Shown one piece after another: positions 16,990-17,585 of a stretch of 64,000 bases of DNA. The notes beneath the pieces were generated by a model. It saw nothing but the letters and a program-made list of their open reading frames with translations, had not been told where the DNA came from and did no database searches. Source of the DNA: Pavona decussata (lineage: Eukaryota). Every line of letters starts with the position of its first letter. The stretch's first letter is position 1. The DNA lies in NCBI GenBank assembly GCA_977016875.1, contig CDRNST010000331.1:1798001-1862000 (forward strand), given 5' to 3'. Both the position numbers and the translations under genes were made by a program.

Positions 16990-17047
16990 GTGGCGGGAAA
17001 ATCCGGCGGGAATGTATGGCATTGTGGCGGGAAAAGTAGCGCGCGCC
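16990..17047 (+). promoter_or_regulatory. Cluster of three E2F-type sites upstream of the acidic ORF
   Basis: GTGGCGGGAAAA at 16990-17001 and again at 17024-17035, plus GGCGGGAA at 17005-17012 (reverse complement of TTTSSCGC), about 160-200 bp before the ATG. Confidence 0.6.
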
Positions 17048-17192
17048 TTTTCTCTGTTAAAAGCTGCGCGACTCTTTCTGGCATTTCATTCCTTCTTTGT
17101 AGGACGTTCGTTGACTTCGTTCACTTGTTCTGTATTTTCAAGAAGTTTGAGACAACCTTTTTTCAGTGCATTCTATTTTTAAACCTGAAAAG

Positions 17193-17585
17193 ATGCCGGC
17201 AGCAGAAGTTGAGACGACTTGCACCACTCCCGCCGTTGAAAAAGAAGTCGAGAAGTTTCCTGAGAAGAGTGAGTCGAACTGCGGGGTAGACAAAGCTTGC
17301 AAAGAAGCGAAGACAGCTGAAGAACACCTCAAGACAACTGAGGAGTCGGAGAAGATGGGAAAAGAGAACTTTCCAGAGATAGAGAACAAAGAAGAGACGC
17401 CGAATGTGATGCCAGAAGACGAAGAAAAAGAGGAATGCGAGGGCGAGGTGTCTGCAATGAAAAAGGAAGAGGAGCCCACAAAAATGGCGGAAAATTCCAA
17501 GCGAAAGTCAACGGAGGGTGATGCAAGTGCAAGCAACCAAACCCAGGAAGATGAAAGCCCACCAAAGAAAAGAAAATCCACCTAA
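17193..17585 (+). CDS. Intronless 130-aa acidic, probably disordered nuclear protein (prothymosin/Df31-like composition) with a bipartite NLS
   Basis: ATG at 17193 (AAAGATGCC), stop TAA at 17583-17585. Purine-rich and GC-elevated relative to the flanks. Hand count about 32 E, 4 D, 19 K. Ends SKRK..(19)..SPPKKRKST. A CpG-rich promoter-like segment lies just upstream. Confidence 0.7.
   Translation: MPAAEVETTCTTPAVEKEVEKFPEKSESNCGVDKACKEAKTAEEHLKTTEESEKMGKENFPEIENKEETPNVMPEDEEKEECEGEVSAMKKEEEPTKMAENSKRKSTEGDASASNQTQEDESPPKKRKST

Follow-up and report, generated by a model that had tools for sequence, protein, structure and literature searches.

The window analysed here, a 64,000-nucleotide stretch of Pavona decussata DNA, contains an open reading frame (ORF) of 130 codons flanked by a RING gene and a glypican gene. 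The locus raises the question of whether a short acidic ORF is a gene in its own right and, if so, whether its product is a histone chaperone analogous or distantly homologous to prothymosin alpha and Df31, as the original prediction proposed. Prothymosin alpha in vertebrates and Df31 in flies are involved in histone handling, the former as a chaperone that binds linker histone H1. Coral growth, regeneration and recovery from bleaching depend on cell proliferation, and, to our knowledge, almost nothing is known about the lineage-specific parts of the coral cell-cycle programme. The features of the locus are collected in Table 1.

Table 1. Features of the locus, in window coordinates
Feature	Position	Strand	Remarks
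RNF168-like RING gene, frame with first coding exon	14208..14669	-	exon ATG 14669; head-to-head with the ORF
Palindromic E2F site TTTTCGCGCCAAAA	14696-14708		about 30 nt 5' of the RNF168-like ATG; conserved in four other species
E2F-type site 1, GTGGCGGGAAAA	16990..17001	+	contains GCGGGAAA, the reverse complement of TTTCCCGC
E2F-type site 2, CCGGCGGGAATG	17003..17014	+	core GGCGGGAA, weaker match; corresponds in alignment to the distal site conserved among orthologues
E2F-type site 3, GTGGCGGGAAAA	17024..17035	+	proximal; aligns in 7 of 7 promoters compared
TATA-like element TTAAAAGCTG	17057..17066	+	promoter alignment; orthologues read TATAAAAGCTG(AATGAC)
Coding sequence	17193..17585	+	ATG 17193; 130 codons plus TAA (17583-17585); no intron
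C-terminal nuclear-import module (predicted)	17499..17582	+	KRKS 103-106, T117, S122-P-P-K, KKRK 125-128
Conserved 65-nt block with poly(A) signal ATTAAA (17989-17994)	17979..18043	+	cross-species alignment
Glypican gene, frame with first coding exon	19275..19721	+	own ATG and signal peptide, start 19275

The gene and its occurrence in stony corals

Comparison of sequences across species indicates that the ORF is a genuine protein-coding gene with an intronless coding sequence, the latter as originally predicted. The locus occurs once in the 602-Mb assembly, and its start context, AAGATGCC, is conserved, with the A at -3 and ATGCC kept among orthologues. A word-based search of 5.8 billion proteins discloses 23 homologues of 52-99% identity, each comprising a core of 120-135 residues that begins with MPAAE or a near variant and ends with SPPKKRKS[TSN] followed by the stop codon; the longer database entries correspond to gene-caller extensions, which read past the stop codon or take in part of the 5' UTR. 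Start, stop and both C-terminal basic clusters are kept in about 25 orthologues. Pairwise comparison of nine orthologous coding sequences gives a median dN/dS of 0.17, including a value of 0.20 for the window and L002, a pair with an unsaturated dS of 0.45, and values of 0.36-0.56 for the closest pairs. Plain DNA alignment of the orthologous coding sequences displays only indels that are multiples of three. In distant species, nothing beyond the ORF, a promoter core and the 65-nt downstream block shows nucleotide similarity. In each of the five related contigs that extend to both neighbours the gene order is the same, with the RING gene on the opposite strand followed by the ORF and the glypican gene. 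The conservation of frame and nuclear signal and the syntenic orthologues under purifying selection, which the original prediction called for, are thus both found, and conservation, synteny and single copy together argue that the ORF is neither a chance ORF nor a transposon protein nor an exon of either neighbour.

A search for positional orthologues by way of the RING neighbour adds a divergent member (L051/L052) of 129 aa, 40% identical and scoring 40 bits against the family profile, which occupies the same head-to-head position with a glypican gene downstream. In the same search, L050 contains no member within 10 kb upstream, and L049 ends 130 nt upstream of the RING exon. The divergent member, used as query in the word search, gives no matches; members of this kind lie beyond the reach of whole-database searches, and 'coral-only' therefore means as far as detectable. 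A HMMER profile search of 1.84 billion representative proteins returns 12 clusters at E≤0.001, some of them frameshifted, all of the same family and none outside it. No family is matched in a Pfam search of the protein and 22 members, and no entry in a PDB sequence search with the family profile at E≤10, in keeping with the description of the gene as an orphan. As far as can be detected, the gene is restricted to stony corals.

The suggestion that the gene was possibly unannotated holds only in part, as orthologues from Montipora and Pocillopora are already public but named no further than 'uncharacterized protein'. The named members comprise (i) XP_068734731.1 and XP_068685041.1 from Montipora capricornis and M. 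foliosa, labelled 'uncharacterized protein', and (ii) CAH3146484.1 from Pocillopora meandrina, labelled 'unnamed protein product'. The RefSeq and ENA gene models in these two genera depict a stand-alone protein of 121-129 aa. The two genera represent different clades of stony corals, the complex (Montipora) and the robust (Pocillopora), and the gene would accordingly predate the split between them. A literature search on run, sample and protein accessions returns no papers. The family is thus already public as uncharacterised models, and what is newly described here is its conserved promoter, import module and synteny. Two database entries, P0028 and P0030, read as the same protein with Leu in place of Pro, Val in place of Ala and Ile or Met in place of Thr all along the sequence, and look as if they were translated from C-to-T (bisulfite-type) converted reads, an artefact in the public protein collection.

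Promoter sites and the head-to-head RING gene

The three E2F-type sites directly upstream of the ORF, two of them identical 12-mers, are present as first described, and comprise two strict sites and one relaxed site located 158-203 nt 5' of the ATG. The core GGCGGGAA occurs five times in the 64-kb window against 0.62 expected, none of 100 shuffles reaching five, and three of the five copies are packed within 42 nt upstream of the ORF. All 11 loci compared (the window, L002-L009, L053 and the divergent L051) display one to three strict TTTSSCGC-type motifs at -124 to -258 from the ATG, in the same orientation, the background of the strict motif being 0.17 per kb in the surrounding 80 kb of orthologous DNA. 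The promoter core preserves a fixed order, with the distal GGCGGGAA, the proximal GTGGCGGGAAAAG, a GC-rich AGCGCGCG and then TATAAAAGCTGAATGAC, flanked by sequences that do not align; site 1 is an extra distal copy common to the closest relatives only. The TATA-like element follows the proximal E2F site by about 25-30 nt in the promoter alignment, and transcription would start just downstream of it. L051 contains three different consensus variants at the same place, GCGCGAAA, GGCGCCAAA and GCGGGAAA, which argues for selection on E2F-type binding and not on one fixed sequence.

Across the genome, tandem GGCGGGAAA pairs number 174, compared with 13 for a control pattern. Many of these pairs sit in dispersed or satellite repeats, which makes the count unusable as a test of specificity. 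The abundance of tandem E2F-type motifs in repeats also means that the motif alone is no proof of cell-cycle control, and the phylogenetic footprint is the real argument. Strict sites located close to the presumed transcription start and conserved in orthologous promoters are what is expected of an E2F target, and we infer on good grounds that E2F controls the ORF.

Several observations on E2F-type motifs elsewhere accompany this analysis. A dispersed 54-nt repeat and a 46-nt satellite array incorporate GGCGGGAAA pairs (e.g., C3:1460472, C6:473854 and C46:3196173-3196920), repeats having spread such motifs over many contigs. The PCNA gene (G000:C156) has an intron in its 5' UTR and an inverted pair, GCGGGAA and TTTCCCGCC, at L040:155-190, about 1.3 kb 5' of the ATG; this pair probably lies in the PCNA promoter and is compatible with the motif seen at the ORF. 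A copy of the ribonucleotide reductase small-subunit gene, examined as a canonical E2F target, is uninformative on the motif. This subunit is encoded by at least six intron-containing tandem copies at G000:C22:333000-376000, and by one full-length copy with a single open frame of 348 aa at G000:C15:3309545-3310351 that may have arisen as a retrogene, come from a virus or symbiont, or be a contaminant. Two more strict consensus pairs occur in the window, at 56864-56962 and 61388-61413 (TTTTCCCGCGC with TTTTCGCGC, and GCGCGAAAAAA twice), and may belong to promoters of other cell-cycle genes.

The RING gene transcribed away from the ORF is presumably RNF168-like by its resemblance to the human protein, Pfam matching its RING only; the last part of its frame, toward 14208, is probably intron read-through. 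RNF168 is a histone H2A ubiquitin ligase that acts in the DNA-damage response, and the palindromic site in front of its coral counterpart makes this gene, too, look like an E2F target. The two start codons lie about 360-440 nt apart in L005, L009 and L051, a bidirectional arrangement. In the window they are separated by 2.5 kb because repeats occupy 15600-16915; the short spacing in some other corals suggests that insertions split an ancestral bidirectional promoter, the tandem E2F sites having remained beside the ORF. The inserted repeats comprise a 102-nt unit in four copies and a 62-nt unit in three copies.

The protein and its likeness to known systems

The protein is moderately acidic, with 28% D+E, 16% K+R, a net charge of -15 and a pI of 4.6, and its longest acidic run is of four residues. 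It contains two Phe, four Cys and neither Trp nor Tyr, in line with the acidic, Lys-rich and aromatic-poor composition originally reported. An AlphaFold2 model built with the family alignment shows no secondary structure (mean pLDDT 56, pTM 0.11), consistent with a fully disordered protein. Conservation is concentrated in five islands: (i) MPAAEVET at the N-terminus, (ii) EKEVEK-x-PEK, (iii) ESEKM-x-KE-x-[FL]PE-x-E-x-K, (iv) [SP]KRKS and (v) NQ[TS]...SPPKKRKST at the C-terminus.

The last two islands form the predicted import module. K103, R104, S106 and K125-K128 are invariant, and S122, P123 and P124 nearly so. The original prediction described this region as a bipartite signal, KRK-x19-PPKKRK; both clusters are present and conserved, but KRK(103-105) is separated by 17 residues from PPKKRKST, the count of 19 applying to the distance from KRK to KKRK. 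The linker of a classical bipartite nuclear localization signal (NLS) comprises 10-12 residues, and the 17-19 of the coral protein is longer. The full CDK consensus said to abut the basic cluster is indeed there, as S122-P-P-K125, and S-P-P-K is kept in 21 of 23 members including the divergent one. A CK2-type site, T117-x-x-[ED], is present in the stony-coral set and absent from the divergent L051.

This layout resembles the CcN module of SV40 large T antigen, in which [S/T]-P-P-K-K-(K)-R-K places a CDK-consensus residue against the basic cluster, with acidic or CK2-type sites a few residues upstream of the CDK site. The defining elements of such a module, a K-K/R-x-K/R core, an adjacent [S/T]-P-x-K/R and an upstream CK2-type site, are all found in the coral sequence. 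As Jans et al. are said to have reported in 1991, CDK phosphorylation at T124 of the SV40 protein lowers its import. The T-antigen sequence reads T124-PPKKKRKV, the core of which is matched by the coral PPKKRK, and the control of import by phosphorylation beside an NLS is established (PMC3022542). Unlike a shared domain, the likeness is that of a short linear motif between unrelated proteins, and convergence is therefore expected. We infer on good grounds that the coral protein enters the nucleus, its C-terminus being a putative classical NLS of the importin-alpha type whose use CDK could gate.

Two further systems invite comparison. PCLAF/PAF15, a PCNA partner, is likewise small and disordered, with a nuclear signal and E2F-type promoter sites; unlike it, the coral family lacks, on inspection of its alignments, both a PIP box (Q-x-x-[ILM]-x-x-[FY][FY]) and a D-box. 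As regards an APC/C degron, the KEN triplet at 57-59 is not conserved, roughly half of the orthologues having KEK or KES instead. The C-terminal tails of the HDGF family, which are acidic, Lys-rich and disordered and carry an NLS, are the nearest protein-language-model neighbours (ESM Atlas, 0.87, below the 0.9 reliability mark); unlike HDGF proteins, the coral protein has no PWWP domain and no Pfam match, and the resemblance is compositional only.

Compared to prothymosin alpha and parathymosin (PF03247), the coral protein shows a general similarity, including a length of about 110-130 aa, acidity, full disorder, a C-terminal basic nuclear cluster and a probable link to proliferation. The kinship and close physico-chemical likeness that were originally proposed are nevertheless not borne out. 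PF03247 matches neither the protein at E≤10 nor any of 22 members at E≤1; a six-frame search of the genome gives no match either, which is weak evidence, as the positive control could not register. Prothymosin alpha contains 49% D+E and carries a net charge of -44, and its affinity for H1 is steeply charge-dependent, dropping about tenfold per three charges lost (PMC11971343). The coral protein has about half of that acidic content and a third of that net charge and, unlike prothymosin alpha, lacks a central poly-acidic tract, contains Cys, Phe and a substantial basic fraction, and is conserved by motif and not by charge: orthologues vary in net charge between -5 and -17 over fixed short motifs, and selection therefore maintains something other than charge.

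The reading of the protein as a functional counterpart or distant homologue of prothymosin alpha/Df31, that is, a polyanionic disordered chaperone binding linker or core histones mainly through charge, is therefore unlikely. It would fit a small, acidic, disordered, nuclear-targeted and probably proliferation-linked protein encoded next to an RNF168-like histone H2A ligase gene, and the two conserved hydrophobic-Pro-Glu motifs, in their acidic context, could serve as anchor-type histone contacts. Against it stand the profile searches, the charge comparison and the language-model neighbours, which are HDGF tails and not prothymosin, albeit at a sub-threshold score. A complex prediction of the protein with the H2A and H2B cores of the genome itself (unit L048) scores 0.00 against a mark of 0.34 and counts neither way. 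These cores belong to a replication-type histone repeat at G000:C185:1409000-1523000, where a unit of about 6 kb that encodes H2A, H4, H3, H1 and H2B is repeated in tandem at least 20 times. If the protein does bind basic nuclear proteins, the evidence points to a motif-mediated over a polyelectrolyte mechanism. A broader proposal is slightly less probable again: that this is the corals' own E2F-driven, CDK-gated acidic disordered chromatin factor, evolved or kept beyond recognition and co-regulated with RNF168, which does the job of prothymosin alpha/Df31 in handling histones during replication or DNA-damage repair.

The explanation that best accommodates the locus, and the one that is probably right as a whole, is an E2F-driven disordered nuclear protein of corals with an SV40-like NLS beside a CDK site. 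Tandem E2F sites followed by the TATA-like element would direct a mono-exonic mRNA, likely expressed at G1/S or in proliferating cells, whose product would be a moderately acidic, fully disordered polyampholyte of 130 aa. Nuclear import would probably proceed via the invariant C-terminal PPKKRK, the KRK upstream forming a second cluster of basic residues, and phosphorylation of Ser122 by CDK, by analogy with the layout around SV40 T124, would be predicted to control import in step with the cell cycle. Inside the nucleus, the protein would most likely act through a few conserved short motifs (MPAAEVET, EKEVEK-x-PEK and ESEKM-x-KE-x-[FL]PE-x-E-x-K) and not through bulk negative charge. The only hint of a role in chromatin or DNA damage is that the head-to-head arrangement with the RNF168-like gene and its E2F site is conserved.

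Orphan disordered nuclear proteins are common, and the gene by itself overturns nothing. The candidate is nevertheless compact and clearly delimited, under purifying selection across both major stony-coral clades, and combines what reads as a promoter of the textbook E2F type with an import signal that CDK could switch. It would lend itself to studying how a disordered protein confined to one taxon is connected to the universal E2F/CDK circuit, and could possibly serve as a handy marker for cycling coral cells.

The transcription unit, the glypican gene and the surrounding DNA

The 65-nt block with the poly(A) signal lies about 400 nt past the stop codon and is 87% identical even in distant species. 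The mRNA would accordingly end near 18010 and have a 3' UTR about 425 nt long, and the gene would produce an independent, mono-exonic transcript of roughly 0.9-1 kb. The public contig L008, of 988 nt, ends 14 nt past its own AATAAA, at the homologous place; it is cDNA-like at this 3' end, but its 5' start, after an Illumina adapter, falls inside the promoter, so that as a cDNA it is ambiguous and suggestive only. L002 and L053-L057, considered as transcripts, were rejected, as they look genomic, being collinear, including the promoter or the RING exon and lacking a poly(A) tail.

The glypican gene starts 1.7 kb past the ORF stop, and Pfam Glypican matches are found downstream in the related loci. 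Its position on the same strand, preceded by about 1 kb of conserved non-coding DNA, would suit a reading in which the ORF, instead of being an independent gene, is an upstream cistron on the glypican transcript or a long leader ORF within it. This is very improbable, given that a conserved poly(A) block, near which L008 terminates, intervenes, that the encoded protein is under purifying selection with a conserved NLS and appears as a stand-alone product in public models, and that the glypican gene has a start codon and signal peptide of its own. A further alternative, that the ORF arose by chance in GA-rich DNA or has no function there, or that it derives from a transposon, is effectively refuted: low-complexity composition, an antisense ORF of 147 aa and repeats immediately upstream would favour it, but the gene is single-copy and syntenic, evolves at the low dN/dS given above with in-frame indels only, and keeps its start and stop in every species.

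The non-coding DNA 5' of the glypican ATG, at 18284-19275, retains about 69% identity even with species saturated at synonymous sites, and may function as a 5' UTR that is long and conserved, as a promoter or as an RNA not yet annotated. On the other side of the ORF, about 160 nt 5' of the E2F sites, a near-perfect hairpin at 16744-16833 has arms of 43 nt that are 98% complementary and a loop of 4 nt. In Rfam it matches mir-1684 below the threshold, at 51.4 bits where the gathering score is 60, and it shares a C-rich 20-mer with the adjacent repeats, which makes a palindromic repeat or MITE likelier than a microRNA.
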